NCBI GenBank assembly: GCA_010909165.1
Contig: VJWM01000068.1
Span: forward strand, 434,001-498,000
Reading direction: 5' to 3'
Length of the DNA: 64,000 nucleotides
DNA from: Anthoceros angustus
Taxonomy: Eukaryota > Plantae > Anthocerotophyta
Part shown: positions 31 through 30,797 of the stretch, in pieces
How the letters are laid out: every line of letters starts with the position of its first letter
Numbering within the stretch: position 1 is the stretch's first letter
Translations under genes and position numbers: made by a program
Notes under the pieces: model-generated
Database searches by the model: none
Told to the model about the DNA's origin: nothing
The model's input: the letters and a program-made list of their open reading frames with translations, nothing else

Positions 31-36
31 AGGAAG
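31..36 (+). repeat. Target-site duplication, left copy (AGGAAG)
   Basis: Immediately abuts the left TIR; the same hexamer abuts the right TIR. Confidence 0.95.
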
Positions 37-63
37 TATGGAATACCGATCTCGTCACACGGG
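37..63 (+). repeat. Left terminal inverted repeat (27 bp)
   Basis: tatggaataccgatctcgtcacacggg is the exact reverse complement of 30080-30106. Confidence 0.97.
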
Positions 64-1149
64 CCCTTTAGGGTTTTTTTCCATTGTGACCAAAGAAGTT
101 TTCCGGCCGCATACGGCGGGAAAACTTCGTACACACTTGACGACATCGGTCGCTCGCTACCGCCTCGTGTCCCGATCTCGCCACTAATGGTGTTTGTGTC
201 GAATCTTTTACGGTTGTGTGTGACACACAATGTTTTCGCTTTTAGGGTCAGTGAGGGCATGGGCCATCGGACATCCTTTCGATGACCCCATCCGCCTGCC
301 GCTTGCCCGCTTGCCATCACGAACCGCCACCGTGGCTTGATGGGAGATAGCGTGAGGAGACAGGCATGCTCGCAAGGCATAGGTGCCCTTCGCCTCGATA
401 GCGCAGCGCCATGTACGCCGCGCTACCGCTATCGCAGCCATCCAGCGTCAGGCGACAAGGGGCCAGCCATACAGCCTCGCGGTAGCGCACACCATCTTCA
501 CAACCAGCCTTTACATTGCACCACAACAAAGCCACCACCGGGCTCAACTCTCAAAACGCCGTAACAAACAAATCCAAATTGTCACCGCCTCCTGTCATGG
601 TGAGCGACAAAATGTCACCGCCTCCTGTGTCATGGTGAGCGACAAATCAATTTTCTCCAGCCTACACCTAGCTCACTCCGGCGGGCTGCAACTGGGCCAC
701 ACGCCTCACACCTCGTGCACCATAGACGCAGCAGGTGATGGCCGCCCACGCCCACGGGTGGCTTCACCTCCGCCCACCGGTGGAGGTATTCGGGCAATCG
801 TCCCTGTGCTCCTGCACTCCCTGCAGTGTTGTTAGTGCCATGTGCACCGATACATGTCCGGAGGAAGTCCATGTCCGCAATCCTTTGCATATGCATTGTC
901 CTCGCCATCTGCGGTTCTGCACAACCCACGCAGCGGCCCATACGATTCGATTCCCCTGCTCGCACAAATGGCGCTGGCGCGCCCTCCCTCCCTCCACAAT
1001 GTCAGAACTCATGACAAAATGAATGGACAGGCGACTGCGATTTGCTCACCGCTCCCGGTCATGGTGAGCGACAAAATGTCACCGAGTGGTGGCATCTCGG
1101 GGCCACGCTTTGTGCATACCGAGGGCCACCCACATCGAACTCCTCGCCA

Positions 1150-1915
1150 TCGCCTCCTCACCATATGCGGGTGGTCGCACCCACCCTTGTAGTCGACCTT
1201 CTTCTTGAATGCGATAGCGAGCACATGGCCGGAATGTCCCCCGCCGGCTGCCCCGATCTTCCGCACCCGTGCCTATTCCATACCGCCTCCAACGCCGAGC
1301 TCCGCCTCATCGTGGCATGAAGGTCACGCAGGAATGGATGTGCTGTGGGTTGGTGATGTCCAGTCACGCTCCTCACCATATCCATCATGTACCCTTGTAG
1401 AGGAATGCCCACTTCTCTCCCAAGGACCGCCAAATGCTCAATCCTCCGCAACCATCCCGCATTCATCGACTTCACCACCGCATAAGGAAAACGACCAACC
1501 TCCTAACTTTTACGGTTGTGCAGAGGGGCGGATGAAGTTGCTTCCATGTGCCCTTGGCCTCGCTCGGTTCATATCTCGCCTCTATTAGGTTGTGCTCGCT
1601 GCGTAGTCCGACCGAATCCGCGGATGCCCAAACTTCCTCACCGCTTCCACATAGGCGTTGAAAATCGTCCCCGCTTGTTATCCTCCAAGACCAACTGTGG
1701 GACGAATGGGTTGCCCCATCTATGGCCCTGCACTCAAGTAGAATTGGTACATCTTGTCATAAGTCGCGACAAGGCAACCATGCAGTGCTGATTGCGCCAC
1801 AACTCCCGCAATCACTTCTTCCTCGCAACGCGAACTGCGAACATCGCATGCCCCCTCTCACGCACTTACAATCCATATGCCACATGTACATGGGTGTCGA
1901 TTGGTATCGGATGCC
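1150..1915 (-). pseudogene. Second (tandem) copy of the transposase catalytic and C-terminal part
   Basis: About 385-1915 repeats about 1915-3420 with many small indels; contains WHMD, FGHPRIRSD, RIEH, GYMMDMVRS and WNRH. Confidence 0.8.
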
Positions 1916-2649
1916 ATGCGCCTCGCGCGCTGGCTATCGCGACCATCCGGCGTCGTGCGCTGAGGGCCAGCCATACGGGCCTCGGCGGTGGCGCACACCA
2001 TCTTCACGAACCGGCCTTTACATTGCACCACAACAAAGCCACCAGGCTCAACTCTCAAAACGCCGTAACAAACAAATCCAAATTGTCACGCTCCCGGGTC
2101 ATGGTGGCGCACAAAATGTCACCGCTCCCGGGTCATGGTGGCGCACAAATCAATTTTCTCCAGCCTACACCTAGCTCACTCCGGAAGCTCGTGGGCCACA
2201 CGCCCCTCACACCTCGTGCACCATAGGGCGTGATGGCCGTCCACGCCCACGGGTGGCTTGACCTCAAATCCAGTGGAGGTATTCGGGCAATCGTCCCTGT
2301 GCTCCTGCACTCCCTGCAGTGTTGTTAGTGCCATGTGCGGCCGATACATGTCGGGAGGAAGTCCATGTCCTGCAATCCCTTTGCATATGCATTGTCCTCG
2401 CCATCTGCGGTTCTGCACACAATGATGGCCCATACGATTCGATTCCCGTGCACACACAAATGGCGATCGCCCTCCTCCCTCCACAATCGTAACCTCTGAC
2501 AAAATGAATGGACAGGCGACTGCGATTTGCTCACCGCTCGGCAATTCTATGCGAGTGGTGGCATCTCGGGGCCACGTTTTGTGCATCTTGAGGGCCACCA
2601 CATCGAACTCCTCGCCATCGTCCTCCTCACCCCCCATATGCGGGTGCAC

Positions 2650-5554
2650 CCACCCTTGTAGTCGACCTTCTTCTTGGAATGCGATGCGAGCACATGGCGG
2701 GAATGTCACAGCCGGCTGCCACGATCTTCCGCACCGGTGCCTATTCCATACACGCCTCCAGCGCTCGAGCTCGCCTCATCGTGGGCATGAAGGTCACGTC
2801 GGGGAATGGATGTGCCGGGGTTGGTGATGTCGATTGCGCTCCTCACCATATCCATCATGTACCCTTGTAGAGGAATGCCCACTTCTCTCCCAAGGACCGA
2901 AATGCTCAATCCTCTGCAACAATCCGCATTCACGACTTCACCATCACTGCAGACAAAGCAGACCAACCTCCTAACTTTTACCTGGTTGTGCACAGAGGGG
3001 CCGCGGATGAAGTTGCTTCCATGTGCCCTTGGCCTCGCTCGGTTCATATCTGCCTCTATTAGGTTGTGCTCTGCTGCGTAGTCCGACCGAATCCGCTGCG
3101 GATGCCCAAACTTCCTCACTGCTTCCACATAGGCGTTGAAAATCGTCGTGCCCGCTTGTTATCCTCCAGCACCAACCAGGGGACGTAATGGGTTGCCCCA
3201 TCTATGGCCCGTGCACTCAAGTAGAATTGGTACATCTTGTCATAAGTCGCGACAAGGCAACCAGGCACCGTCGGTGATTGCGGTCACAACTCCCAATCAC
3301 TTCTTCCTCGCAACGCGAACTGCGAACATCGCATGTGACCCCTCCTCTCACGCACTTACAATCCATATGCCACATGTACATGGGTGTCGCATTGGTGTCT
3401 TGGGCCAGCGGATGCGCCTTGTCGGCCGTCGTGCCATGTGCTCCGGCCGCATCAAACGCAGCCTGGCACCGCCTCCTTGGGATTTCGATTCCATCCACAG
3501 CCTGCACGAATCGTATTCCAGCGTTCACGCTGCCGGTGATGGGTGTGTGCGTGGCAATCACTGCAGACAAGGAAAACGCACTACCTCCTAACTTTTACAG
3601 TTGTGCACGGAGGGGCGGATGAAGTTGCTTCCATGTGCCCTTGGCCTCGCTCGGTTCATATCGCCTCTATTAGGTTGTGCTCTGCGTAGTCCGACCGAAT
3701 CCGCGGATGCCCAAACTTCCTCACCGCTTCCACATAGGCGTTGAAAATCGTCGTTCCCGCTTGTTATCCTCCGGCACCAACGAGGACGTAATGGGTTGCC
3801 CCATCTATGGCCCGTGCACTCAAGTAGAATTGGTACATCTTGTCATAAGTCGCGACAAGGCAACCAGGCACCGTCGGTGATTGCGGTCACAACTCCTGCA
3901 ATCACTTCTTCCACCTGCGCGAACTGCGAACATCGCAGCCCCTCCTCTCACGCACTTACAATCCATATGCCACATGTACATGGGTGTCGCATTGGTGTCT
4001 TGGGCCAGCGGATGCGCCTTGTCGGCCGTCGTGCCATGTGCTCCGGCCGCATCAAACGCAGCCTGGCACCGCCTCCTTGGGATTTCGATTCCATCCACAG
4101 CCTGCACGAATCGTATTCCAGCGTTCACGCTGCCGGTGATGGGTGTGTGCGTGGCAATCACTGCAGACAAGGAAAACGCACTACCTCCTAACTTTTACAG
4201 TTGTGCACGGAGGGGCGGATGAAGTTGCTTCCATGTGCCCTTGGCCTCGCTCGGTTCATATCGCCTCTATTAGGTTGTGCTCTGCGTAGTCCGACCGAAT
4301 CCGCGGATGCCCAAACTTCCTCACTGCTTCCACATAGGCGTTGAAAATCGTCGTTCCCGCTTGTTATCCTCCGGCACCAACGAGGACGTAATGGGTTGCC
4401 CCATCTATGGCCCGTGCACTCAAGTAGAATTGGTACATCTTGTCATAAGTCGCGACAAGGCAACCAGGCACCGTCGGTGATTGCGGTCACAACTCCTGCA
4501 ATCACTTCTTCCACCTGCGCGAACTGCGAACATCGCAGCCCCTCCTCTCACGCACTTACAATCCATATGCCACATGTACATGGGTGTCGCATTGGTGTCT
4601 TGGGCCAGCGGATGCGCCTTGTCGGCCGTCGTGCCATGTGCTCGGCATCAAGCAGCGCCTCGTCACTGCCTCCTTGGGATTTCGATTCCATCCGATTGCA
4701 CACTGCACGAATCGTATTCCAGCGTTCACGCCGTCTTGGGTGATGGGTGTGTGCGTGGCAATCGGCGTGCACACCTCCTCCACGGACAACCTCCCATACA
4801 CCCGCGCCATGCCGCAGCCGCAGGAGCCTCGTCACCGTGCTCAAGCTGCAGCCTAGCTCCGTCGGTAGGCCTTTCAATGGCCTCCCTGCTTGCAAGTGCT
4901 GCACCGCCAAATCGTACACAGTTTGCGGTGTAAGGCGCGCGCTCAGCCCGCCGCGTCTCCTATGCATCCCTTCATCTCCCCCTTCCAGCCCCTCATCCCC
5001 ACCTGGCTGCTCGCACGAGAATTGCCTGAAGTGTTCACCGTCCGCATGATGATGGGCTTCCATGACCTCGATGCGGCCGTCTTTGGCGCCGCCCACCATC
5101 TTCCTCCTTCGGCCCCTGGAAGGCCGCCGGCCCATGGGCACCCTTCACTGCCGTTTTGCCCCACGTGATGGCCAAGGTGGAGACTCGGTGGCCTCAACAC
5201 CTCCAGACCTCGCGCCGCCTACTTGCATGGGAGCGCTTTTCCTGCCCATGCGCCTTCCTCCCGCTCAAACCCCAAATGCACCTCTCTGAGCAGTAGGCGC
5301 GATTTGATCCTCCTAACACTTTCCGCCCGAGTAATGGCATGTCCGCAGCCAAGGGTTTCAGACAAAGGGATCGACCGGCGTATGCCCACTCCGATTTTTT
5401 GTTCCGCTGGGACGGTCCGCCAGTTCAAGCGCTTGCGGGACGGGGGTTTCCACACCGCGGCTGCATCTGCAGAGGTAGACTGCCTGCAGCAAGTTCCTGG
5501 CTGAAAGCGCCCGTAGCTATCACGGTTTACTTTTCGTTTCCGCATTTCATTCAT
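2650..5554 (-). pseudogene. IS3EU-type DDE transposase (HTH + integrase core), intron-containing, frameshifted and internally duplicated as assembled
   Basis: Pieced across frames: MNEMRKRKVNRD start (5554); HTH LAVQHLQAGRPLKGLPTELGCSLSTVTRLL; RLSVEEVCTPIATHTP..NAGIRFVQ; PMYMWHMD (D1); YDKMYQFYL..AIDGATHYV.WLVLEDNKR; FNAYVEAVRKFGHPQRIRSDYAAEH (D2); NFIRGPSVHNQ|RIEH (E); GYMMDMVRS..DITNP..WNRH. This follows the WHxD..IDG..P.R.RSD..S.HNQRIE..WN.H pattern of this family. GT-AG intron 2914-2981 lies between HNQ and RIE; a GTAAGT donor follows WHMD. Confidence 0.88.
2950..4760. repeat. Three tandem ~600-bp copies of the transposase core segment
   Basis: Lines starting at 3361, 3961 and 4561 are identical; period 600 bp. 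Confidence 0.92.
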
Positions 5555-5814: not shown

Positions 5815-6950
5815 CTCTGCGAACATCGCAGCCCCTCCTCTCACGCACTTACAATCCATATGCCACATGTACATGGGTGTCGCATTGGTGTCTTGGGCCA
5901 GCGGATGCGCCTTGTCGGCCGTCGTGCCATGTGCTCGGCATCAAGCAGCGCCTCGTCACTGCCTCCTTGGGATTTCGATTCCATCCGATTGCACACTGCA
6001 CGAATCGTATTCCAGCATTCACGCCGTGCCGGGTGATGGGTGTGTGCGTGGCAATCAGCGTGCACACCTCCTGCACGGACAGCCTCCCATACACCCCGCG
6101 CCATGCCGTGTGCCGATGCAGGAGCCTCGTCACCGTGCTCAAGCTGCAGCCTAGCTCCGTCGGTAGGCCTTTCAATGGCCTCCCTGCTTGCAAGTGTTGC
6201 ACCGCCAAATCGTACACAGTTTGCGGTGTAAGGCGCGCATGCAGCCCGCCGCGTCTCCTATGCATCCCTTCATCTCCACCTTCCGGCCCTCATCCCCACG
6301 GCTCCTCGCACGAGAATTGCCTCAAGTTTTCACCGTCGCATGATGATGGGCTTCGCCATGACCTCGATGCGGCCGTCTTTGGCGCCGCCCACCATCTTCC
6401 TCCGCCGTCGCTGGAAGGCCGCGCGCGTCCATGGGCACCCTTCACTGCCGTTTTGCCCCACGTGATGGCCAATGTGGAACGGTGGCCTCAACACCCTCCA
6501 GACCTCGCGCCTTCCCGTCTGATGGGCGCTTTTCCTTGCCCCATGCGCCTTCCTCCCGCTTCAAACCCCAAATGCACCTCTCTGAGCAGTAGGATTTCGA
6601 TCCTCCTCCACTTTCGCCCGAGTAATGGCATGCAGCCAAGGGTTTCGTCGGGGCGCTCGATCATTGTTAGCGTATGCCACTCCGATTTTTGTTCCACGGA
6701 CGGTCCGATTCAAGCGCTTGCGGGCGGGGTTCCACCGCATCTGCAGAGGTAGATCACTGCAGCAAGTTCTGGTGGCGCCCGTAGCTATCACGGTTTAATT
6801 TTCGTTTCCGCATTTCATTCATTGTTTGAAGTGCGACCACAAGTGCACTCCACCAACACTTCCAAACCAACAGACGCACCAAACACCGTCTGTATGTGAA
6901 CAATCTAGAATGGGCGCTTCACGGCGTGCAAACACACTTGCGTCCTGCCC
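5815..6950 (-). pseudogene. Duplicate copy of the transposase N-terminal/HTH part
   Basis: About 5820-6950 repeats about 4530-5680, including the LKGLPTELGCSLSTVTRLL HTH and the MNEMRKRK start. Confidence 0.8.
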
Positions 6951-6969
6951 ATTTTACGGGCCATCGACA

Positions 6970-9450
6970 ATTAGCGATGGCTGCCTCTCCTATCTTCACT
7001 CTTGATGCTTCGCAAACCCGGCAAATGACAGAACCTGCTGTCTTACCTCAATGCGCAGGGGTTCCACGACGGTCCTCGGTGCGAACAAAAAGGCATGGGA
7101 TCTTCTAGCTATCACAGCGTATCCCGTGCGACCCCCCATTGTGTGGCATGCCCTGATAATCAGGTCACATGCTTCCAGCGTTTGGAATACTCCCTCTTCG
7201 TTCGATTCGAAGTCCATGTAACATATGAAATGCTCCCCTGTACACGAACGGCAATGACCGCGCCCACAAAAATTGTGTTGATCCAACTCCTCGGGAGGAT
7301 GCTCAATGTCCCAACCGCCGACAAACGAGCCTCACGCATGTTCCAATGCCGTGGCCCGGTCCACAGCACATGTGACGCCGGTCCCATTCCGCCCAACCGC
7401 CTCACCACTAGCTTCCAACTCCACTTCTCCGATTGCGTAACATCCATCGCTATCATTCCCTCCACTGCGACCATAGGGTGCCATCCAACCCGCTTTTCCT
7501 CCACTTTCGAACGACGGTGATTGCCGAAAAGGCGCCCTTCTCTCGAAAACTCCCACACAGAAGCCTCCATTGACTTCTCACAGAGCATGGTCACAGCTGG
7601 CGTTCCTATCTCGATGGTCAGGCACGCAGATTGCAATCCTGGGTCTTCGCGAATTGCATCCACAACGGCACCAACGTGCCATGCCAGTTCTTTGGCGCGT
7701 TCCAGCATTCCGTGCCCCATGCGTGCATGACAGCCTGCCCACCGAGGCACCTTCAGCTCCACCTCCAACCCAGACCTCAGTGGCTGTGGGCCACAATCTG
7801 TCCTCTCCACAGCAGCGAAAATGAAATCTTTGTGCATTGCGGACAACGCTGGAACCTCCAATACCATGAGTACCCATTTCCCCGGACCAGCATCGTGCCA
7901 CATTTCTCGCCTCCCGGTGCCATGTACGCTCGCATGCGGAGTCGTGGAGTGGATTTGCCGGGACTCTCCCACTCCCACACCGGCTCCACCGCCGCCCGGC
8001 TTCGAGCCACCGCCGCCCACGGCCTCCTCCGCCCGTCCGCGCATGTGCCGATCGTCGTTCGCATTGGCGCCTTCCGGCGAGGAAGGCGTTCGGCGCCGGA
8101 CGGCCACACGGCAAAACCGCCGCCCGATGACCACGCCACCGCAACCTCCGGTCGGCGCGCCGCCCACGCCGCGGCGGCGCATCATCTTGCCCGGCCCCCT
8201 TCCTCCACCGCCGCCGCTTCCACGGCCTCCTCCGCCGCCGCATCATGCCGCCGCCGCCGCCGCCGCATCATGCCGCCGCCCCTTCCTCCACTTCGCCGCC
8301 GCCGCCGCCGCCCGGCGCCCACCATCCACCTCGCCGCCTCGGATCGCCCCGCGCAGCGACGACGCGCCATCGCCCACGCCTCTCCTATCTTCACTCTTCA
8401 GCGCCGCAAACCCGCAAATGATGAACTGCCTTACCTCAATGCGCAGGGTTCCACGACGGTCCTCGGTGCGAACAAAAGGCATGGGATCTTCCAGCTATCG
8501 AGCGTATCCGTCGACCCCCATTGTGTGGCATGCCACGATAATCGGTCACATGCTTCCAGTTTGGAATACTCCTCTTCGCTCGATTCAAGTCCATGTAACA
8601 TATGAAATGCTCCGTCTGTTGTACACGAACGGCAATGACCGCGCCCACAAAAATTGTGTTGATCCAACTCCCTGGGGAGGATGCTCAATGTCCCCACCTG
8701 CCGACAAACGAGCCTCACTGCATGTTCCACTGCCGCCTGTGGCCCGGTCCACAGGCACATGTGACGCCGGTCCCATTCCGGCCCAACCGCCCTCACCACT
8801 AGCTTCCAACTCCACTTCTCCGATTGCAGAACATCCATCGCTATCATTCCCTCCACCTGCGACCATAGGGTGCCATCCAACCTGCTTTCCTCCACTTTCG
8901 AACGACGGTGATTGCCGAAAAAGGCGTCCTTCTCTGTGACCGAAAACTCCCACACAGAAGCCTCCATTGACTTCTCACAGAGCATGGTCACTGCTGGCGT
9001 TCCTATCTCGATGGTCAGGCACGCAGATTGCAATCCTGGGTCTTCGCGAATTGCATCCACAACGGCACCAACGTGCCATGCCAGTTCTTTGGCGCGTTCC
9101 AAAGATTCCGTGCCCAGGCGTGCATGACACCGCCCACCGAGGCACCTTCACCCACCTCCAACCCACCTCAATGGTCAGGGCCACAATCATCCTCTCCACG
9201 GCGAAAATGAAATCTTTGTGCATTGCGGACAATCCTGCAACCTCCAATACCATGAGTACCCATTTCCCCGGACCAGCATCGTGCCACATTTCGCCTCCCG
9301 GTGCCATGTACGCTCGCACATGCGGAGTCGGTGGAGTGGATTTGCCGGGGTCTCTCCCACTCCCACACCGGCTCCACGGTCGCCCGAGCTTCCGCGAGCC
9401 ACCGCCGCTTCCACGGCCTCCTCCGCCGCCGCCGCTGCGCATGTGCCGAT
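6970..9450 (-). pseudogene. Transposon cargo gene B, unknown protein, two tandem degraded copies
   Basis: Globular-looking peptides recur in both copies (~6970-8050 and ~8380-9450): WHDAGPGKWVLMVLEV..ERAKELAWHVGAVVDAIREDPGLQSACLTIEIGTPAVTMLCEKSMEASVWEFS..FAPRTVVEPLRIE, followed by a GTAAG donor. Confidence 0.55.
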
Positions 9451-10579
9451 CGTCGCGATTGAGCGCCTTCCGGCGAGGAAGGCGCGGCGCCTCGGATCGT
9501 CGAGATCCCCACCGCCGCCCGATGACCACTCGCCACCGCAACCTCCGCCGCCGCCGCCGCACCTCGCCACCGCCGCCGCCGCCGCCCACGCCGCCGCCCC
9601 TTCCTCCACTTCGCCGACTGCGCTGTCCTCCGGCCCGGGCGCCCGACCATCCACCTCGCCGCCTCGGATCGCCCCGCGCAGCGACGACGCTGGCCCATCG
9701 CCCACGCCTCCCGGGCCGCAAACTCGAATGGATCATACCCACCGCACACAAGAGTTGTGAGGCTCACGACGCCGACCGCGCAGCTTACATTTCGACCGGA
9801 GGCCACATAGCCCCGCCGCATCATGCCGCCGCCAGGGCGGCGAGTCAGACGCCCTTCGGAAAGCCGCATCAAGCATGGCCGTGGGCAATGGAGAACGCCG
9901 CCTGTGTGCAATCCACCCTGCAATCAACAGCGAGGTTTGAGAATTCATGGCTGACCGACGCAGATGCAGCATCGCGCACACGGGCTGACCACCTCTGTCT
10001 CCACTTCTAGGTGCACCTCCACAGAGATCGACGTCCAAAACGCCCCCTCCCAAGGTGGGTGCGCCAATCGGTTGATCCTGCCACCGCGGCCAGCAGGCTT
10101 CCACTCCACCTTCCGTTCGGACGACTGCTACGGGTTGTCCATGGCCTCTCCCACTCCTCCTCCGCCGCCATGGCTCCTTCGGCGCCGTGCCGCCGCACCT
10201 CCTCCTCCATCGCCTCCCGCTTCAACGCACCATCATGGCGGGCATTGAATGTGCACGGAATCATAGGTATACTTGCACGGCCTCGGGATCGTCGAGATCC
10301 CCACCGACCGCCTTTACGCCGCCGCCCATTCGCATCCGTGATCCGTCTGCAAGCGCCGCATATGCGCATGTTCACCGCACCCTTCCGCCCGCGCGCGGTG
10401 CAATTGCGATGCCATGCGTGCCACATGCATTCTCGCCACACCGCATTTTCAGCAAACATTGAATGTGCAATCGCGCACGATCGCACACCTTACAACGATC
10501 CGCAACTTAGCGGCACCTCCTCCATCGCCTCCCGCCGCCGCCGCTTCCGCGAGCCACCGCCGCCGCCGCCTCGCAACCC

Positions 10580-11290: not shown

Positions 11291-11799
11291 TACCTACTCA
11301 CCGCCGCCACCTTCCACTCTTCAAGCGCAACCGCCAGCCGGAACACACCAACCCACCGGCCGCCTCGCTCGCCGCCGCCGCCACGATCTTGTGTTCCTCA
11401 TCCTCCTCCACGGCACGGGCGTCGGGCGCGTTGCCCTTTCCACCCACCGCCACCCGGCCGCGCCTTCCTTGCACGTAAATGTCGCACCCGTTTCCCTTCC
11501 ACCACCCGCTGCAACCGCCCCTTCCACTCCTCCTCCTCCGTCGCGGTTGATCCCGCCAAGTACTCGAACATGGTTCTCGCTTCCACCGCCGGCCGCCCAA
11601 ACCCAACCGCACACGCGTATCGCCACCCACTTCCCTAATTTCACTAACCCCTCCCTTTGGTGGCGTGGTGAGTAGCTCGCACACCACAAACCCCTTTCAC
11701 TTTGAGGCCGCCATACAACCTCCCAATTTTCATTTCCAACCAATCCATCTTCCGCCCAGTGGTGTGGTTTTGATATGCCGGACATACCACCGGAAGAGG

Positions 11800-14100: not shown

Positions 14101-14179
14101 GCGGGCCGGGTAAGGGCGGGGAGGACCAGTGCTGGTCGGGATGGGGTCAGGATGTGGGAGTGACCAGGACAAATCTCCG

Positions 14180-17100: not shown

Positions 17101-20100
17101 TGGTGATTGCAGGTTGAGGCGGGCATGGAGTGCCAACAACTGTTCGACAATTTCGCGGGCCGGGAGGGACCTTTCCCACCGCTTAGAGTGCGATCGCACT
17201 GCACGGGACATGGTGATGTAGTCCACGAGGTTGGAAGGACGCAGCGGCCTACGAGACGGTGCATCGCCGAGGCTCGGAAGTACTGGAGTCGCCGTCATTT
17301 GTGGACGGCGTGTTCGAACGCAACGCGGGCTCGGCGGTGCTACACATTACCACATCGCCCATGGAGTGCATCCGACCCCTACGGCGCATGGTAAGATATA
17401 TGGCATCAATTGATGCAAAATGTGCAGTGCCGACGACGGCAGATGCCTCCTTGTGCGAGCCATGTTCTTCGCCACCGCTACGTCACCGGCAAATGGCATT
17501 GAGGTGAGTCGTCCCATGACATTTGCCACACTCGACGCACTAGGGAGCCAAAAGGATGGCGTGCACAAGGAGTGGAAGGATGCGGGCACGAGAGGGCGTT
17601 GAAGAGGGCTTTTAAGACGGATATGTTGACAACCACCCACCTCATGGCCATCCTCCAAGAATCAAACGCGGGCTCGGCGAAGAGGAGCAAGAAAGCGATT
17701 TCATCGGCCGCTGGTCCGATGGCGCATGTGCTCCGGATTTTTCAAGCATGTGGCCGACCTGAAGCCCTCGCATGTCCTGGGGCGGCAGGTGGCGCGCATT
17801 CGGAAGAAGGTGCAGGACCGCTTTTATTCACCGGTGCCCGCACGCGTTGGCGGGTGGGTGGGAGAGGGTTCCGGCATGTGGTGCACACTGGACAAGAGGG
17901 CCATGTTGGAGTGTCTAGGGAGTGCACGCTTTGAGAGTGTCACTGTTCTTCACCGCCACGCATGGATGCAGGCGACGCCTCGAGTGAGTGAGATTCGAGG
18001 CGCTTGCCGCAGCTTAGAGAAATGTTCGTGAAATCGCCGAGAGATGTCATTCGGCGATAGAGCTACTGCTCACCTTCATCACCGGCGAGTTTACTTCGCA
18101 GGCCAATGGTGGTCGTGCAAGTTCCTCCGGCATTTGGGCACCGCCTCGAGGACGTGCTCGCACTCTCGCTCCCGCCTATGTCTCAAGCTCGTGATGGCCA
18201 CGCGGGTGAAGCCATCCGCATGAACTCCGTGTATGGGAACGCTTGAAAGGCCGGCCTCGAGTCGGACTGCTTCATTAGAGACCGCAAGTGGTTTTCGAAG
18301 TTGTGTTTGTCTGGCCCCGCACAAGAGGGCACTAATGTGAAGAGACTTTGAGCCGTCCGCACTCGCTTGGTTTGCGATGGCGGATACGAAAACGAGGCAC
18401 CGCACGCATGGATGCAGGCGACGCCTCGACGTGAATTGCTTTCCGTCACCAATTGAGAATGGACAGAAACAAGGTCGGGGCGCAATAATACGGAAAACCG
18501 TAGGGTTGGCGGTGGCATTTGCGCCGGGCCAGGTCGAATGGCGCGGGAACGGAAGTGCAGTCCGCCAGAGGTTCCAATCGGCCGCGGCCTGCCCGACAAT
18601 CACAATGGGCAAATGGAAAGAGGTGCAGGCAGTGAGGTTTTGGAGGCGGAAGGTCTTCCACTGTGGAGCGTGCACCGGGTACGCATGGCGACTGCGAGGG
18701 TGGTGCATCACGAGCAAGGTTGTTGTCATTGCGACAATCCGAGGTGGACAGCTCAAAGTTCTTCTGTACATCGGATGCGAGCTGCTCATAATAGCAATGG
18801 CGCGATTCGGAAGAAGACAACCGCAGAAGTGTGCGACGTGGAAGTGCGGTCGTTCCGAGTGTGCTCACCGATGAGACAGCGAGGTTTGGGCCACCGCATT
18901 CCGCCGGTGAGGTGCCGGGCATGACGCCGAGGAGTTTGACCGCGTGTGGAAGACGGGATGCAGCGCAGGTCGCGGGATGCGGAGGAAGGCGCTTTGGTGC
19001 ATCATCGATGGTGAGCCCACTCGCACGCCGCACACCATCCGCTGTCGCAGCGGTGCCTTATGCGGTGGGAGGAAGGTCCTTCAATGCGCAGTGGAGGGGC
19101 GGCGGTGGCGCGATTCGGAAGAAGGTGCAGGACCGCTTTTATTCACCGGTGCCCGCACGCTTGGGTGGGTGGGAGAGGGTTCCGGCATGTGGTGCACACT
19201 GGACAAGAGGGCCATGTTGGAGTGTCTAGGGAGTGCACGCTTTGAGAGTGTCACTGTTCTTCACCGCCACGCATGGATGCAGGCGACGCTCGAGTGAGTG
19301 AGATTCGAGGCGCTTGCCGCAGCTTAGAGAAATGTTCGTGAAATCGCCGAGAGATGTCATTCGGCGATAGAGCTACTGCTCACCTTCATCACCGGCGAGT
19401 TTACTTCGCAGGCCAATGGTGGTCGCAAGTTCCTCCGGCATTTGGGCACCGCCTCGAGGACGTGCTCGCACTCATCGCCCCGCCTATGTCTCAAGCTCGT
19501 GATGGCCACGCGGGTGAAGCCATCCGCATGAACTCCGTGTATGGGAACGCTTGAAAGGCCGGCCTCGAGTCGGACTGCTTCATTAGAGACCGCAAGTGGT
19601 TTTCGAAGTTGTGTTTGTCTGGCCCCGCACAAGAGGGCACTAATGTGAAGAGACTTTGAGCCGTCCGCACTCGCTTGGTTTGCGATGGCGGATACGAAAA
19701 CGAGGCACCGCACGCATGGATGCAGGCGACGCCTCGACGTGAATTGCTTTCCGTCACCAATTGAGAATGGATGAAACAAGGTCGCAATAATACGGAAACC
19801 GTAGGGTTGGCGGTGGCATTTGCCGGGCCAGTCGAATGGCGCGGAACTAAGTGCGCCCGCCGGAGGTTCCAATCGGCCGCGCCCCGCCCGACAACCACAA
19901 TGGGCAAATGGAAAGAGGTGCAGCGGAGGTTTTGGAGGCGGAAGGTCTTCCAGGTGGAGCGTGCACCGGTACGCATGGCGATCGCGAGGGTGGTGCATCA
20001 CGAGCAAGGTTGTTGTCATTGCGACAATCCGAGGTGGACAGCTCAAAGTTCTTCTGTACATCGGATGCGAGCTGCTCATAATAGCAATGGCGCGATTCGG

Positions 20101-20580
20101 AAGAAGACAACCGCAGAAGTGTGCGACGTGGAAGTGCGGTCGTTCCGAGTGTGCTCACCGATGAGACAGCGAGGTTTGGGCCACCGCATTCCGCCGGTGA
20201 GGTGCCGGGCATGACGCCGAGGAGTTTGACCGCGTGTGGAAGACGGGATGCAGCGCAGGTCGCGGGATGCGGAGGAAGGCGCTTTGGTGCATCATCGATG
20301 GTGAGCCCACTCGCACGCCGCACACCATCCGCTGTCGCAGCGGTGCCTTATGCGGTGGGAGGAAGGTCCTTCAATGCGCAGTGGAGGGGCGGGCGGCGAT
20401 CGGGGCGGGCGAGAGGCGCAGGGAATGGCCTCCAAAGGGAGGTGCATTTCTGATTGCGGCCCTGGCCGCAATCACCGGAGGCATAGCGGTGAACTTGCCT
20501 GGGGTGGCGATGGCAACAGTGCTGCTCATAATAGCAATGGCCGCGATCGCGAGTGGAAGAGTGGTTGTGGAATGGCGGTA
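14180..20580 (+). pseudogene. Transposon cargo gene(s) D, unknown, frameshifted, 3' part tandemly duplicated
   Basis: Protein-like pieces: AIVDACEALFDK..RGRLMQMLYIRDVDAQF; GLVRLLEDMDDDQTFDP; KRAFKTDMLTTTHLMAILQES; RIRKKVQDRFYSPVP..WCTLDKRAMLECLG; HHRRVYFAGQWW. Candidate intron 17042-17112 (GTGAGT...TTGCAG). About 17795-19100 repeats at about 19105-20390. Confidence 0.45.
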
Positions 20581-21299
20581 GCAAAGGGCACTGTTTTATA
20601 CTCCTCCATAAGTTTGGTGTTTCGCAAACGCCGCAGTTGATTTGTAATCGGTCCAAAGCCTAATGACGAATTTGCTCGTAGTGGTCGGTCCAAAGCACAA
20701 CGACTTGGTGTTTCGTTTTCATGTCTTTGTATCATGGCAACTAGTCCTCGGCCTTTGGCCCAATGACGAAAACAACATGACGAAAACAACATCGCTGCCA
20801 TTCGCCTTAGGCCGAGGACTAGTTCATGACATGATTTTTTCTGGTTGACGTCCAAAGGCCAAGGACTAAAATGTACTCCTGGATTGACGAATGGTCCGAA
20901 TGTAAGGTCCGATTCATGTGTAGGTAGAAAATCCATTTCCCAACTACACGGTACTTGCCTATCCTGCCCTGCCTGCCTATATATACGAAGACAAGGCCTT
21001 CCCCTTTGGACCATCCTGACCGTCATGAAAGGGAAAATACTCATTGGCCTTTGGAGCTTTCACATTGGCAATGAAGGGAACAAAACTCCTTGGCCTTTGC
21101 ACCAATATGTCAATCAATGAAGGGAAGGAAGACCTTGGCCTTTGGACCAAACCGAGAATCACCAAATGAAACCAAGTAGCTATGCGACCATTGCGACCGC
21201 TTAGCTGTGACCATTGCGGCTGCATAGGTGCGACCATTGCGACAAAGACACGCGAACGACGGTCCCACTAGACAATGCGGTTCCCAAAGGTGAGAAGAG

Positions 21300-23830
21300 G
21301 GAAAAGAGAAAAGAAGGGACTAAGTATGGCTGCCTATCCTTTATGACAAACATGTACAATCGAAGAATCATAGGTTGGGTAGCCCACATATATAGGCAAA
21401 ACCACCGGGACTCTCGATGAAGCACCACCGCACGATGGTAGGCACTATGATCTATTTAGAGTCCTACTTCTCCTTGGCCTTTGAACAAATGATATTTATG
21501 CGCTTAACAACCTACTAGCCCTTTTCCTTGGTTTATGATTTTGTATTTTCTATATAGGTGCGGTGACCTATATATGTGTCGAGTAATCGTGCCTTACAAA
21601 CATCGCGATGCACATAGGTTGATTGTGCCATGACACAACATCTAGGTAGACATGTTCACATACACCACATGACGTGGTCCAAAGGCCAAGGCCAAGGACG
21701 TTTCTTCCTATATATAGGCGGTAGGGCGGGGATAGGCAAGTAGCGTGTAGTTGGTAGTCCATGGTTGGGTAGCCCACATATAGGCAAAAACCGGAACTTG
21801 ATGGAGTGCCACCTCACGATGGTAGGCGCTTAGGTATATTTGTAATCCCACTTGTCCTTGGCCTTGAACAATTGATATTCATGCAATCAAGAACGACGCC
21901 TTTTCCTTGGGTTATGGTGTTTACGTAGTTTGAATATAGATGCGACCTATATATGTGTCATAGTACCGAACATGCATCACGATGCACATAGATGGAAAAG
22001 GTGCCCATGATGAGCATCTAGGTATACATGTTCACATACTTCACATGTCAACCATCCATCCTGCATGCATGCATACCATGTGCTTTCCATGTGCACATTT
22101 TCCTTGGGTTTTGATTTTTAGGTCTTTTCTATATAGATTCGTTGACGATGTATGTGTCGAGTACCGTCGAACATATATCACGATGCACATGCACATGGTA
22201 TGTATGCATGATGCCCGTTGATGTGATGCATGTGACCATGTCTACGTAGATGCCGTGTCGTGGGCACCTTTTCCTTGGGTTTTGATTTTTATGTCTTCTC
22301 TATATCGCACGTGACCTTTATATGTGTCATGGTACCCTTCCGACATGCATGACGGTGCACATACATGGATTGTGCCATGGCACAAAGATCTAGGTACAAA
22401 TGTTCGATGCATCACATGACAACCAGCCATCATGCATACATACCATGTGGATGCCATCCATAGGCAATGCACATGTGACATTGGTCCAAATGCGAAGGAC
22501 TTTTCTTCCTATTTATAGGCAAGGCGGGGAAAGGCAAGTACGTAGATGCCGTGTCGTGGGCACCTTTTCCTTGGGTTTTGATTTTTATGTCTTCTCTATA
22601 TCGCACGTGACCTTTATATGTGGCATGGTACCCTTCCGACATGCATGACGGTGCACATACATGGATTGTGCCATGGCACAAAGATCTAGGTACAAATGTT
22701 CGATGCATCACATGACAACCAGCCATCATGCATACATACCATGTGGATGCCATCCATAGGCAATGCACATGTGACATTGGTCCAAATCGAAGGACTTTTC
22801 TTCCTATTTATAGGCAAGGCGGGGAAAGGCAATCGTAGATGCCATGGATAGATGGCGTGAACACATCGGAAAAGGCGGAAGTGGTAGGTTGACTAGCGGT
22901 CAACGATCGTCCGGACTCCAAGCAAGCAGAAGCACGCTTAGAAGGTTGGAACCGCATGAATCGAAAGCGGCGGTGGCAACATGCGTGAGCCCTCCGCAGC
23001 CTGTGGCGGTGGTGTTGGAAATCGAATAGTCACAGCAGCTTGGCGCGAAGCGGCCAAACAGTCCTGGTGGCAACGGCGATGCATTGGGGTGCCAAATGCC
23101 ACCGCACGATGGTAGGCGATTAGGTATATTTGTAATCCCACTTGTCCTTGGCCTTGAACAATTGATATTCATGCAATCAAGAACGTACGCCCTTTTCCTT
23201 GGGTTATGGTGTTTACGTAGTTTGAATATAGATGCGACCTATATATGTGTCATAGTACCCTGCCGAACATGCATCACGATGCACATAGATGGAAAAGGTG
23301 CCCATGACACAGCATCTAGGTATACATGTTCACATACTTCACATGTCAACCATCCATCCTGCATGCATGCATACCATGTGCTTTCCATGTGCACATTTTC
23401 CTTGGGTTTTGATTTTTAGGTCTTTTCTATATAGATTCGTTGACGTATGTATGTGTCAGAGTACCGTGCCGAACATATATCACGATGCACATGCACATGG
23501 TATGTATGCATGATGCCTGGTTGACAGGTGATGCATGTGACCATGTCTACGTAGATGCTGTGTCGTGGGCACCTTTTCCTTGGGTTTTGATTTTTATGTC
23601 TTCTCTATATACTGGCACGTGACCTTTATATGTGGCATGGTACCCTTCCGACATGCATGACGGTGCACATACATGGATTGTGCCATGGCACAAAGATCTA
23701 GGTACAAATGTTCATGCATCACATGACAACCAGCCATCATGCATACATACCATGTGGATGCCATCCATAGGCAATGCACATGTGACATTGGTCCAAATCG
23801 AAGGACTTTTCTTCCTATTTATAGGCAAGG
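21300..23830. repeat. Internal non-coding repeat block X' (inverted relative to 11800-13500)
   Basis: Reverse-complement motifs ttttccttgggtt (many copies), acttgtccttggccttgaaca (about 21850 and 23140) and gggtagcccacatata. Confidence 0.85.
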
Positions 23831-23849
23831 CGGGGAAAGGCAATCGTAG

Positions 23850-26800
23850 ATGCCATGGATAGATGGCGGGGAACACATCGGAAAAGGCGGAAGTGGTAGG
23901 TTGACTAGCGGTCAACGATCGTCCGGACTCCAAGCAAGCAGAAGCACGCTTAGAAGGTTGGAACCGCATGAATCGAAAGCGCAGGGCAACATGCGTGAGC
24001 CTGCGCCGCGGTGGTGTTGGAAATCGAATAGTCACAGCAGCTTGGCGCGAAGCGCCAAACAGTCCTGGTGGCAACGGCGATGCATTGGGGTGCCAAATGC
24101 CACCGCATGTATAACAGAGGCTTTCTTCGAAGTTGGGGCAGCTCTTCACCAAGAACTCCAAGTGCCACTTTTCAAAGTGGAAGCTCACGAGCATAGGCGT
24201 TTTGCGATATGGGCGGCGGCGGCAGGTGGAAGACATGGAGCTCGACACACCCATGTGCCGGGGAGAGGAGGGAGGCGACCGGAAGGCATGGCGGCCGGGC
24301 ATCAGGAGCGCACTGGCCGCTGTGGCGGTGGCGACGATGAGGAAATGGCCGGCCGGGCGGCGGCGGCGAGCATGCAGCCGCAGCAGCGGAGGCGGTGGCG
24401 GCGTGAGGGCTGCAGCCCACCGAGGGCTGCAGTAATGCTTGAAGACAGAGGCCCCAGGACGAGCATGCAGAAAGTGAGGGCTCGGTCGCCGGCTGATGCG
24501 AGGCGCGGCATCCCGATGCCGCTTTGGTGGAGCCCTCCGCAGCCTGTGGCGTGCCACCTGGGGCGCCCCAACAAGCGGCGGTGGCGGCGGCGAGGTGCGC
24601 TCTTTTTGCCCTTGCTGGGCCAGCGGATGGCGCGTTCACCCCGCCCAAACCTCGGAGGCGTGCAGAGGGGTCTGCATGCAGCCCGAAGTCCCCGGATCGC
24701 AGATGAGGGGTTTGAAGGCGACACCGAGGGTCGCAGCAGCAGCCGGGTTGCCGCATGCGCCCGGCAGCCGCAGTGGAGGATGACGGCCGGGCGGCGAGCA
24801 TGCAGCCGCCACCGTAGGGAAGGGGTGGATCGGCCGACCGCAGCCAATGGCCGCAGTGAGGGTGGCTCGCCTGCACACGCCAATGGCTGCAGTGCAGGGG
24901 GATGGCTCGGCCGCATGCGCCGAGGGCCGCAGCCTTCGAGCCGCCGGCCGACATTCGCCTGCCCCACCAACGGCTGCAAGGCGAAGCCCAAGGACTGCAA
25001 CCCAGGTGGTTGCAGCCAAGGCGATGGCTGCAACGACAGAGGCGCATGCCGGGACGGAGGACCAGGCTTCCCTTGCGCCTCCTTCTCATGGCGTGCCAGT
25101 GGGGGGCGAGGGCGGAGGAGGTGGGGACGGAGGCAGCGGTGAGGATGGTGGGGCAAGCGGCTCCAGGCCGGGGAAGGAGCCCATGCCGGGGGCGCTTTCC
25201 GGTGGCAGTGGAGGCCAACGAAAGCGAGGAGGGAGAGGAGGCGCCCACAGCGGACGACGATGGAGACGTGGATGGGTGAACGGGCGAGGGAGCGCCAGGA
25301 CAACAATCGGAAGACTCGATGGTAAGTGAACGCACAATCCGTGATCGCAATGTGTTTGACAATGCTGGTGGGTTCGATTGTCATTGTCATGCCTCGTAAT
25401 GCCGGTTGCAAGTGGTGAACTTTGCCATGCCGTACTCATATGTCCGCGAGTTGGGTTTGCGGTGTGGACGGAGTGGACGACCAGCCCTGCTGTGGTCATC
25501 TACGACGAACGGAACTTCGCTCGCATCCGCTATACGGACGTGGAGCGCCAAGATCGAACGAGATCGGCGGCGGGCGGGCGGAGGAGGAGGCAAGAAGGCC
25601 GAGAGAAGAGCTGGCCGAGCTCATCGCTGAGCTCGAGGCGCGCGGCACCGGAAGAGGAAGAGGTGCACCTCCCATGTCCGGTGCGGAGGCGGCGAGACCT
25701 AGCGGGCGGCGGCGGGCGGCAAGGCCAAGATGCAAGGCGAGAGTGCCGAGGGGCGAACCCTGCCGCCGAGAGGCGTGAATGGGGCCAGCACTGGGAGGGG
25801 CCACCGCCCAAGGCCGCAATACAGGTGGGGCATCCACCCAATGGAGCTCGACACACCCATGTCGCGCCGGACGGAGGAGGGAGGCGACGAAGGCATGGCG
25901 GCCGGGCGGCGGAGGCGAACCCTGCCGCCGAGGCGGTGGCGACGATGGCGAGGAAATGGCCGGGCGGCGGCATCGCTCGCCCGGCCCGCAGCGGCCAGAG
26001 CAGCGCGAGGCGGTGGCGGCCGAGGGCCGCAGCCCACCGAGGCTGCAGCAATGCTTGAAGACAGGCCCCCAGGACGAGCATGCGGCGGAGGCTCGGTCCG
26101 ATGCGAGTGGGGCAGCATCCCGATGCCGCTTTGGTGGAGCCCTCCGCAGCCTGTGGCGTGCCACCTGGGGCGCCCCAACAAGCGGCGCGCCGAGGCGGTG
26201 GCGGCATCCCTTGCGCCCCACAAAGGGCCCGGCAGCGGATGGTCGCTGCGGCCCGCCCAACCTCGGAGGCGTGAGGGGCGATTGCATGCAGCCCGCGAAG
26301 TCCCCGGACCGCAGATGAGGGTCGCTGAAGGCGACACCGAGGGTCGCAGCAGCCGGGTTGCGCATGCAGCCGCAGGGCCGCAGTGAGGATGACGGCCGGG
26401 CGGCCGACGCCGCCCAGGGAAGGGGTGGATCGGCCGACGCAGCCACCAATGGCCGCAGTGAGGGTGGCTCGCCCGCATGCGCCGCCAATGGCTGCAGCAG
26501 GTGGGATGGCTGGCCGCATGCGCCGAGGGCCGCAGCAGCGAGTCAGCCTTCGACATCCCTGCAGCCACCAACGGCAGAAGCCAAGGATCGCAACCCATGT
26601 GGTTGCGCCAAGAGCGCAAACAGAGGCGCATGGGACGGAGGACCGGCATCCCTTGCGCCTCCTTCTCGTGACGTGCGTGGCGAGCGGAGGAGGTGGGGCC
26701 GAGGCGGCGAGGATGGTGGGGCAAGCGGCTCCGTGCCGGGAAGGAGCCTGCGGGGCGCGGTGAGAGTGGAGGAGAACGAAACCGAGGAGGGAGAGGAGGC

Positions 26801-29520
26801 GCCCACGGACAAGGAGACGTGGACTGGGTTGCGAACGGGCGAGGGAGCGCCACCGGACAACAATCGGAAGACTCGGTAAGTGAAGACGCACAATCCGCCG
26901 TGGATCGCAATGTGTTTGACAATGCTGGTGGGTTGTCATTGTCATGCCTCGTAATGCCGGTTGCAAGTGGTGAACTTTGCCATGCCCGGTACTCATATGT
27001 CCGCGAGTTGGGTTTGCGGTGTGGACGAGTGCCCTGCTGTGGTCATCTACGACGAACGGAACTTCGCTCGCATCCGCTATACGGACGTGGAGCCGCCAAG
27101 ATCGAACGGAGATCGCGCGGTGAGCGAGGAGGCGCAAGGCGAGAGAAGAGCTGGCCGAGCTCATCGCTGAGCTCGAGGCACCGGGCACCGGAAGAGGAAG
27201 AGGTGCACCAATGGGGGCAGCCCGGCGGGCGCCTGTGGGGCGGCCAAGATGCAAGGCGAGAGTGCCGGAGGGGCGAACCCGGCCGCCGAGGCGTGAATGG
27301 GGCCAGCACTGGGAGGGGGCCACCGCCAAGGCCGCAATAGGTGGGGCATCCACCCAATGGAGCTCCGAGTATGGTAGCAACGCAAGTCCAATGCGCTGTA
27401 ATCGACGCCGCCATGACGGGCGCCATCGGCCTCCTTCTTGAAGTGGTGGAGAAGGTGCGCAACCCGAGGGTCCACCGCACCGACATGGAGGGAGTGATGG
27501 ACAGACTCACGATCGCCGACAACGCAGCCTGGGAAATGCCGCGCGCTTCATGGAATACATGAACGCAAAGAATGGCCGCATCCTCCATGCCATCGGGCCA
27601 ATGTGCAAGTGCGGTTGCCGGTGGTGGATGCCCCTCTCCGCAATCGCCCCCGCCACGCCTTCCGGTTCGGGGTCCCCTTCCCATTGGTGCCGGGATGAAC
27701 CCGCCTCCCCAACCTCACAGGACAGCTGGTGCACTGCCCGCCATGGCACACCGGGTGCACCTCCCATGTCCGGTGCGGAGGGATATTCGCCCTCCACAAG
27801 AAAAGACAGGGGCGAACGGAAGTCCGCAGAGGAGGAGCCAAGTTCGAGCACAAGAGGATGGAGGGGCCGCTCGAGGCTCTTCCGCGATCGACCGTGGGCG
27901 AGGGAGGTGTTTTTTTTAGAGCGCCCCACCATGAGGTGTGAGCGCAGTTATGTTCGGATGTTTTTGGTTGAACGCGCATGCGCCGCCAATGGCTGCAGGT
28001 GGGATGGCTCGGCCGCATGCGCCGAGGGCCGCAGTGCGCCGAGGGCCGCAGCCGATTCGCTTGCAGCCCACCAACGGCCGCAAGGCGGCCAAGGATCAAC
28101 CCATGTGGTTGCAAGGCGGAGGTGCAAACAGAGGCGCATGCCGTGACGGAGGACCGGCATCCCTTGCGCCTTCTCGTGACGTGCCTGTGGGGGCGGGCGG
28201 AGGAGGTGGGGCGAGGCGTGAGGATGGTGCCTGTGCCGGGAAGGAGCCTGCGGGCGCCCGGTGAGAGTGGAGGAGAACGAAACCGAGGAGGGAGAGGAGG
28301 CGCCACGCGAGGCGAGACGGACCGGGTTGCGAACGGCGAGGGAGCGCGCCGGACAACAATCGGAAGACTCATGGTAAGTGAAGACGCACAATCCGCGGAT
28401 CGCAATGTGTTTGACAATGCTGGTGGGTTCGATTGTCATTGTCATGCCTCGTAATCTTGGTTGCAAGTGGTGAACTTTGCCATGCCGTACTCATATGTCC
28501 GCGAGGTGTGGACGGAGTGGAGACCAGCCCTACTGTGGTCATCTACGACGAACGGAACTTCGCTCGCATCCGTATACGGACGTGGAGCCGTAAGATCGAA
28601 CGAGATCGGCGCGCGGGCTGGAGCGGAGGAGGCAAGGCCGAGAGAAGAGCTGGCCGAGCTCATCGCTGAGCTCGAGGCAGGCGTGGCACCGGAAGAGGAA
28701 GAGGTGCACCAATGGGGGCGGCACTAGCAGGGCGGGCGCCTGGCCAAGATGCAAGAGAGTGCCGAGGGGCGAACCCGCAGCCGCCGAGAGGCGTGAATGG
28801 GGCCAGCACCTGGGGAGGGGCCACCGCCCAAGGCAACAAGGTGGGGCATCCACCCAATGGAGCTCCGAGTATGGTAGCAACGCAAGTCCAATGCGTAATC
28901 GACGCCGCCATGACGGGCCACGCACGCCTCCTTCTTGAAGTGGTGGAGAAGGTGCGCAACCCGAGGGTCCACCGCACCGACATGGAGGGAGTGATGGGAC
29001 TGACGACCGGGCCGACAACGCAGCCTGGAATAAAGACGCGTCGGCTCATGGAATACATGAACGCAAAGAATGGCCGCATCCTCCATGCCATCGGGCCAAT
29101 GTGCGCGGTTGCTGGTGGTGGATGCCTCCTCCGAATCGCCCCCGGCCACGCCTTCCAGCTCGGTCCCCTTCCCATTGGTGCCGGGATGAACCCGCCTCCC
29201 CAACCTCACAGGGAGGTGCACCCGGCCATGGCACACCGGGTGCACCTCCCATGTCCGCGGAGGGACATTCGCCCTCCACAAGAAAAGACAGGGGCGAACG
29301 GAAGTCCGCAGAGGAGGAGCCGGAGCACAAGAGGATGGAGGACCGCCGAGGCTCTTCCGCGATCGATCGTGGGCGAGGGAGGTGTTTTTTTTGTGGCGCT
29401 CCCACCATGAGGTGTGAGCGCAGACTATGTTCGGATGTTTTTGGTTGAACGCATGCGCCCGGCAGTGTCCGTAGGACTGGAAGTGGATTTGTAGGACGCA
29501 GTGACATTGCCCTCGCTTTG
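23850..29520 (+). pseudogene. Transposon cargo gene E, unknown intron-containing protein in 2-3 overlapping degraded copies
   Basis: Recurring peptides: NNRKTR|gtaagt intron (25322-~25412, also ~26876 and ~28374); VVNFAMPYSYVRE..VVIYDERNFARIRYTDVE; EELAELIAELEA; LLLEVVEKVRNPRVHRTDMEGVM; MEYMNAKNGRILHAIGPMC. Confidence 0.55.
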
Positions 29521-30079
29521 ATGAGGTTGAGGAGGGATAGTGTGAAGCATGTTCGATCTCGTAATGCCCGCATTGCAATGGTTTCCTTCGCAATGCGTGT
29601 TCGGTTTGAAAGGTGAAGTTACGATCATCTTCGTCCGTCGCCCCATACATCCAACGCAAGCACAACACAAGCATGTTAGTAGGCAAGCACACCAACGTAG
29701 GGATCGCCCCACATCCCGCCCTTCCCGCATATATAGTGAAAGCGATGTGTAAGCGGAGGATTTGCGGTGCGCCGAACGCGGCCATACCGCGAACAAAAGT
29801 TCTGTGTATGTGTTGCCCGCCATGTTTGTGTAGACCCGATGAAAACCCTAACACCGCCATCAAAAACATGTATGACACCACAACACCGCCATGAAAAAAC
29901 ATGTATGACACCATCCAACACCAGCCGAGGAACGTGTGATAGAATGTTTTTCCCCGCCAGACAACCCCGTGAAGTGATGTGGCAATGACATTATACGTGT
30001 ATTATACGTGAGTATCGAAAAGATTCCGTGGCATATCCTCGTAGCGTACACCGAAAAGAAAGAAAGTCACACACAGACT

Positions 30080-30106
30080 CCCGTGTGACGAGATCGGTAT
30101 TCCATA
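30080..30106 (-). repeat. Right terminal inverted repeat (27 bp)
   Basis: cccgtgtgacgagatcggtattccata, 27/27 match to the left TIR. Confidence 0.97.
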
Positions 30107-30112
30107 AGGAAG
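30107..30112 (+). repeat. Target-site duplication, right copy (AGGAAG)
   Basis: Immediately follows the right TIR. Confidence 0.95.

Positions 30113-30345: not shown

Positions 30346-30797
<452 letters not shown>

Follow-up and report, generated by a model that had tools for sequence, protein, structure and literature searches.

A probably young GingerRoot/IS3EU-type DNA transposon with about 19 kb of non-redundant sequence, assembled as 30 kb

Two identical short inverted repeats lying 30 kb apart raise the question of whether the sequence between them is one mobile element and, if so, to which family it belongs, how long it really is and what its broken reading frames mean. Here, we address this question for the element bounded by such repeats near the left edge of a 64-kb stretch of contig VJWM01000068.1 (64,000 nucleotides, referred to as the window). 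Its left terminal inverted repeat (TIR) of 27 bp starts with TATGG (37-63, plus strand) and recurs identically on the minus strand at 30080-30106, as comparison of the two ends revealed. On both sides the TIRs are bordered by the 6-bp target-site duplication (TSD) AGGAAG (31-36 and 30107-30112), which was seen by inspection of the sequence as well as in the end comparison. These coordinates and the identical end sequences bear out the perfect TIRs, the AGGAAG duplication and the TAT..ATA ends reported in a preliminary description of this DNA. The inverted similarity is confined to the 27 bp, with none past base 27, and no further TIR-like copy was found in the 64-kb window when up to 8 mismatches were allowed. 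A 27-mer inverted pair would arise by chance in 64 kb with a probability of about 2e-7, the TSD not yet counted. The element is a single insertion with intact ends. Since TIRs and TSD are perfect, it appears to have moved as one unit, and the insertion is probably young; the earlier proposal of a recent transposition is thereby supported.

The family of the element is indicated by its transposase. A Pfam profile search located a protein with a helix-turn-helix (HTH) and PF24764 on the minus strand at about 2176-5554; PF24764 matched in 2709-3158 (E=6.4e-9) and HTH_23 in 5852-6289 (E=9.5e-4, below the curated cut-off), both on the minus strand. No match to an integrase zinc-binding (HHCC) domain was obtained in this search. 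The N-terminal region is thus HTH-like and lacks the HHCC motif, as in IS3EU and GingerRoot transposases, and the first exon aligns to a relative, L014. A frameshift-tolerant alignment to this clean relative places the catalytic triad in PMYMWHMD (first D), RIRSD (second D) and RIEH (E). The PF24764 match together with the WHMD, RSD and RIE residues gives a DDE core of the IS3EU type; the IS3EU-type transposase of the preliminary description is therefore confirmed by the profile matches to PF24764 and the HTH and by the D-D-E residues. Moreover, about 51 of 97 core columns are identical between this transposase and SL_GR-020, a Selaginella GingerRoot element in which motifs and motif order agree (counted by eye; alignment in the supplement of PMC10045372). 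The termini, TATGG..CCATA, show the TA..TA ends of IS3EU/GingerRoot (TAYGG..CCRTA in fungal families), and the AGGAAG pair has the 6-bp length typical of this group. Because of ends, TSD, D-D-E triad, PF24764 match and likeness to SL_GR-020, the element belongs, as judged from its sequence, to the IS3EU/GingerRoot group. A core tree of 13 rows and 89 columns, with metagenome, fungal and animal relatives as rows and most inner branches left open, groups the single-exon core at 100/100 with metagenome relatives having WHMD-intron-AYDK and separates it from those of fungi and animals. The idea of an undescribed plant lineage was not borne out, as GingerRoot represents the same group in lycophytes and mosses, with 6-bp TSDs, TA..TA ends and captured gene fragments (PMC6839031).

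The gene structure of the transposase could be traced in spite of its repeated segments. Its first exon (4558-5554, minus strand) encodes the HTH region and the motif PMYMWHMD, which contains the first D, and is followed by a GT donor; 4558-4934 is placed by homology and a start is predicted near 5554. The donor lies one base past WHMD, a position common to the relatives L003, L004, L008, L010 and L014. The best copy of the second exon, found by profile search and alignment at 2982-3247 (minus strand), reads YDK..RSD..SVHNQ, contains the second D and PF24764 and has one frame break. Directly after SVHNQ follows an aligned GT..AG intron (2914-2981, minus strand), and a GT is present at this position also in L003 and L008. 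The third exon onward (2176-2913, minus strand) comprises RIEH with the catalytic E, a WNxH motif and the C-terminal region, and is frame-broken as assembled. Further copies of the second exon align at 1519-1764, 3600-3850 and 4200-4450, and an extra copy of the first-exon region lies at 5817-7087 (minus strand). An extra copy of the 3' half (428-1905, minus strand) pairs with 1933-3396 at 88% identity and with 74 indel events. A segment of about 600 bp is present three times (first copy at 2943-3559, second and third in 3557-4763), and its middle copy is chimeric. As assembled, every copy of every transposase exon contains at least one frame break. The loci L002-L021, which were fetched for comparison, resemble the window in the transposase only, a single weak match of 29 amino acids (E=8e-4) being disregarded, and no TIR pair with TSD was seen in them. 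In one GingerRoot relative, a ceramidase-like (PF05875) ORF lies between transposase exons 1 and 2 (L004:8060-8671; also in L005 and L006), apparently part of a gene that was captured or that inserted into the intron. A match of P0009 to a bacterial chemoreceptor was rejected as a false hit.

As assembled, the element measures 30,070 bases. Self-comparison uncovered about ten tandem duplications inside it, with copies 82-99% identical; second copies of internal segments of 0.3-1.6 kb make up 10,902 bases, so that the collapsed length is 19,168. The 30 kb previously given as the size of the element could consequently not be confirmed as its true length. Whether the duplications are artefactual or real, about 19 kb of the element is non-redundant, which exceeds the published GingerRoot maximum of 12.9 kb. 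Seven large duplication offsets fall within 1290-1606 bp. In addition, 8 isolated exact repeats of at least 18 nt were counted in 5.1 kb of the interior, vs. 0 in 20 nulls and 0 in 9 kb of flank; overall, such isolated exact repeats in the interior measure 15-37 nt.

The differences between the duplicated copies follow a distinct pattern. All 10 internal pairs are rich in indels (13-69 indel events per kb, about equal to or above the number of substitutions), and in all of them transitions are about as frequent as transversions. Difference events are concentrated at CWG, i.e., CAG/CTG (174 vs. 69 expected, z=13.7), and at CG (224 vs. 140 expected, z=9.6), whereas no such excess is seen at TA; the increase at the GC and GWC controls is smaller (z=4.2) and probably due to their overlap with CWG and CG motifs. 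Compared with the partner copy, 442 CWG sites comprised 98 gaps, 72 other substitutions (chiefly CTG>CCG and CAG>CGG) and 12 deamination-type (C-to-T) changes. Which copy retains its CWG sites switches in long runs (clean/noisy: 169 vs. 116, reached by 0 of 5000 shuffles). CWG observed/expected is 0.62 inside the element vs. 1.48 in the flank, with an abrupt shift at the right TIR, and CpG observed/expected is 0.97. In the flank, pentatricopeptide repeat (PPR) ORFs of 814 and 1066 amino acids are unbroken.

Methylated CCWGG sites are documented as a main cause of errors in nanopore consensus sequences (PMC6591954), and in the hornwort Anthoceros agrestis transposons are marked by methylation at CG and CHG (PMC10952607). 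The copy differences thus appear to fit nanopore errors on methylated DNA, not ageing. The element would then be densely CG/CHG-methylated, multi-copy and silenced; the nanopore consensus may have miscalled the methylated sites, with short-read polishing correcting patches only. As such errors would explain the indels, the broken frames are weak evidence for a dead element, and the frameshifts, read from the assembly, would reveal little about the integrity of the transposase in the plant itself. In this context, sizes and "dead copy" verdicts for such elements in this assembly are unreliable, as methylation-linked errors mimic decay and stuttered segments inflate length.

What does the element carry apart from its transposase? 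To judge from the GC skew, the part left of about 11.7 kb would be coded on the minus strand and the part right of about 14 kb on the plus strand, and reading the interior across frames yields long protein-like text. In family searches covering the ORF pieces between 6.3 and 24.2 kb, none of 108 pieces matched Pfam and none of 88 of them matched NCBIfam or PHROGs, while the transposase was found despite the same noise. Tests of period-3 and amino-acid composition were underpowered (z of only about 1-2 for the transposase control). The several unrelated internal genes of the preliminary description were therefore not confirmed. A SET domain in the element was unsupported by any match.

The best candidate within the interior is a chain of motifs resembling a HECT C-lobe at 18066-18243 (plus strand; motif pattern), consisting of LLxFITG, ASRTC with a putative catalytic Cys, LxLP and a stop, with a second copy near 19375-19551. 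From LLxFITG to ASRTC the chain spans 26 codons and from there to LxLP 7 codons, with the stop about 33 codons past ASRTC; in fetched HECT C-lobes the motif order is the same and the corresponding spacings are 30, 7 and 36-39. The chain occurred in 0 of 400 simulated 30-kb sequences, a count to be read with a pattern that was written post hoc, after the sequence had been seen. On these motifs and their spacing, we consider it likely that 18066-18243 encodes a HECT C-lobe-like tail. A cargo-carrying nature of the element is plausible, and the HECT-like tail is the only part for which the sequence appears to offer support. In the animal-type IS3EU locus L021, a PF00632 ORF faces the transposase. 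More broadly, animal-type IS3EU loci show a CUE plus divergent HECT gene in this facing orientation (L021:4211-6518, PF00632 and PF02845; L017:4569-5000, similar by eye), and the same gene type was observed at L022:3882-6465, where no transposase was called nearby. No literature linking IS3EU or GingerRoot to HECT was found.

As a whole, the findings are best explained, in our estimate with somewhat better than even chances, by a young GingerRoot/IS3EU element of about 19 kb with methylation-linked nanopore errors and mostly artefactual internal duplications. On this view, a large cut-and-paste DNA transposon, about 19 kb in size and from the plant branch of IS3EU known as GingerRoot, would have inserted into the window once and not long ago. 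DDE transposases pair both TIRs, excise the element and join it into a 6-bp staggered cut, the repair of which yields the TSD. Likewise, the transposase described here would bind both TIRs, excise the element and insert it via a 6-bp staggered cut, giving rise to the TSD. A few accessory genes encoded by the element are probably present in its interior, one of them with a domain resembling a HECT ubiquitin ligase at its end. With regard to the duplications, their restricted range of sizes, the polishing in patches and the exact repeats standing in isolation fit segments that were added in the assembly process, which makes it rather probable that they are mostly an artefact: most of the 1.3-1.6-kb tandem copies, together with the short junction repeats, were probably introduced during polishing or local reassembly. 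Anthoceros assemblies made from nanopore reads with racon and six Pilon rounds provide a fitting example. As no paper showing that Pilon creates such duplications was found in the literature, duplication by polishing is a step that we infer. Alternatively, the duplications could be real, the element having grown from about 19 to 30 kb by template switching in gap repair, with its transposase scrambled, so that the window would show a dead, non-autonomous copy mobilized in trans, with sequencing artefacts confined to the noise at single bases. Gap repair with template switching is a source of both duplications and filler repeats, and filler DNA is known from Ds-type elements; the isolated exact repeats of 15-37 nt resemble such filler DNA, and a chimeric middle copy in the 600-bp triplication is expected from unequal crossing-over. 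However, independent duplications would here cluster at 1.29-1.61 kb, about ten large events with TIRs and TSD still perfect would demand a very high rate, and each copy switches between clean and noisy patches. We therefore regard real duplications as rather unlikely.

Two further explanations concern the interior and the ends. The interior could be an old, decayed mass of nested repeats without genes of its own, in which the indels are real mutations. The 108 ORF pieces without family match and the lack of a homologue for the region at 6983-11700 (candidate gene 2) speak for this option, whereas the spectrum is opposite to that of methylation-driven decay (12 deamination-type changes vs. 98 gaps at CWG), CpG observed/expected is 0.97, the TIRs are identical and the HECT motif chain has family-like spacing, rendering it improbable. 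Still less credible, and in our view very improbable, is that the two ends derive from different copies or from another superfamily (CACTA, Mutator or Polinton) joined by misassembly or chance; the interior is indeed poorly assembled, but the same 6-bp TSD stands on both sides of the only TIR pair in the window, TA..TA ends go along with a GingerRoot-type transposase, and 0 of 88 ORF pieces had a PHROGs match. Several points nevertheless weigh against the explanation favored here, namely the young element with methylation-linked errors and mostly artefactual duplications. Frame breaks are partly common to two transposase copies; the probable artefact origin of the duplications is read from the sequence pattern, and poor polishing with an identical pattern of errors would be expected of recent genuine duplications, too. 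The assembly procedure with racon and six Pilon rounds is a fitting example only, and the nanopore platform of the window assembly is itself deduced. Furthermore, a frameshift-tolerant coral HECT profile gave the candidate 13.8 bits vs. null maxima of 17-22, which is not significant, Pfam (PF00632), PDB and a local profile gave no significant match for it either, and no cargo gene other than the HECT candidate was identified. A more far-reaching version is tentative, with clearly less than even chances: a recently active, heavily methylated and intact GingerRoot subfamily of about 19 kb with 3-4 accessory proteins of its own, including a HECT ligase also found beside animal IS3EU transposases. 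If true, it would represent an old, undescribed pairing of transposase and E3 ligase that methylation-linked errors of nanopore sequencing have concealed. Should the HECT tail prove genuine and common to animal IS3EU elements as well, a ubiquitin ligase would be standard equipment of these transposons, possibly directed against host silencing.

Apart from the transposase, the interior can be divided into candidate genes and repeat blocks. Candidate gene 2 (6983-11700, minus strand) is a protein-like region without family match, in which 6983-8382 is repeated at 8378-9710; it had no match in a homologue search, the Atlas, PDB and viral contigs. The AT-richer block A (11797-13526, no strand) consists of repeats of about 200 bp and contains CATGCA 18 times vs. 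5.4 expected. Candidate gene 3 (14000-18243, plus strand) is protein-like across frame breaks and has the HECT-like tail at its end; an Atlas search with 17217-17504 gave only weak unnamed matches. It is followed by candidate gene 4 or a continuation with a Cys/His-rich end (18260-20580, plus strand), 17779-19105 being repeated at 19096-20396. Block B (21259-23780, no strand) is an inverted, internally duplicated copy of block A (79% over 1336 columns) and is also rich in the RY-like motif CATGCA (28 vs. 7.1 expected). The same end of both blocks faces the start of candidate genes 2 and 5, as duplicated promoter modules would; alternatively, a nested element could have these blocks as its long ends. 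The GC-rich candidate gene 5 (23850-29500, plus strand) includes duplications of 1.5-1.6 kb (24235-25849 at 25841-27365; 26474-27984 at 27975-29459).

The flanking DNA gives hints on the host. Intact PLS-class PPR genes identify it as a land plant, in agreement with the preliminary description, while its suggestion of a fern was not confirmed. These two related genes are divergent and share 70% DNA identity (37915-41042, minus strand; 46452-49652, plus strand). A further plant gene (43581-44537, minus strand) has its best match in the lycophyte Diphasiastrum, which at 43% does not fix the species, and a homologue also in Cryptomeria. About 280 bp to the right of the element lies a broken histone H3-like gene with frameshifts and stops (30392-30800, plus strand). 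Trp/Leu-rich ORFs at 32282-32869 (plus strand) and 36578-37627 (minus strand) share similar amphipathic C-terminal stretches. Duplications occur here as well: the minus-strand PPR gene contains a near-exact tandem copy of about 140 bp (38468-38752), which puts the final part of the gene out of frame and may reflect the same assembly stutter, and a 181-bp tandem copy (43624-43984, 98%) alters the frame of the gene at 43581-44537. A direct repeat of about 540 bp (50100-50637 and 52143-52691, 82%) differs mostly by substitutions, unlike the duplications inside the element, and is useful for comparison, showing what a genuine old duplication looks like. Further to the right follow nested inverted repeats around a short center (54322-55782, 76-91%), like a foldback or a miniature inverted-repeat (MITE-type) element, a 30-bp minisatellite of about 35 copies (57695-58808) and, recognized by eye from a CASxHIC-type motif, Copia-like gag and protease-region ORFs (60193-61510, plus strand).

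How does the element compare to known systems? With Polinton/Maverick elements it shares the 6-bp TSD, the size class of 15-30 kb and an integrase-like DDE enzyme, but it differs in its TA..TA ends, short TIRs and GingerRoot-type core, and a protein-primed polymerase, packaging ATPase or capsid matched none of the ORF pieces up to 24200. Closer are the IS3EU elements described in Repbase from animals and fungi, which form one clade with GingerRoot (99% bootstrap; PMC10045372) and, in rust-fungus families, have the same TAYGG..CCRTA ends and 6-bp TSD (PMC10045372; PMC12730594). Accessory genes are known there, too, as fungal IS3EU families carry TET/JBP and alpha-kinase genes (PMC12730594). In contrast, the core in the window stands apart from fungal and animal rows in the tree, and the gene order differs, with the transposase here at one end and reading outward.

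The closest counterpart is GingerRoot, which was described in 2019 from Selaginella lepidophylla with 77 intact elements, a 6-bp TSD and mostly TA..TA ends (Cerbin et al. 2019; PMC6839031), and whose relatives occur in mosses and lycophytes (PMC6839031). Hornworts and HECT are both unmentioned in that paper, and no literature linking GingerRoot to hornworts was found. In S. lepidophylla, TIRs are 100-150 bp and elements 3.9-12.9 kb long, and 22 elements contain host gene fragments, with passengers of 84-1654 bp (PMC6839031). The element described here has TIRs of only 27 bp, a size of about 19 kb collapsed (30 kb as assembled) and, where published passengers are gene fragments, a suspected several kb of protein-like sequence and a suspected HECT-like tail. 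It thus falls outside the narrow S. lepidophylla ranges, which describe the families of one species and not the superfamily. On the other hand, it shares with these elements the 6-bp TSD, the TA..TA ends, a non-seed plant host, extra internal sequence and, as in SL_GR-020, an integrase-like DDE core with PMxxWHMD-YDK, IDGAT, GHP-R-R-D, EHNLIE and GPSxHNQRIEH. In this respect the family assignment is ordinary; what it adds to the group of 2019 is a larger size class and, if the host is a hornwort, the hornworts as hosts.

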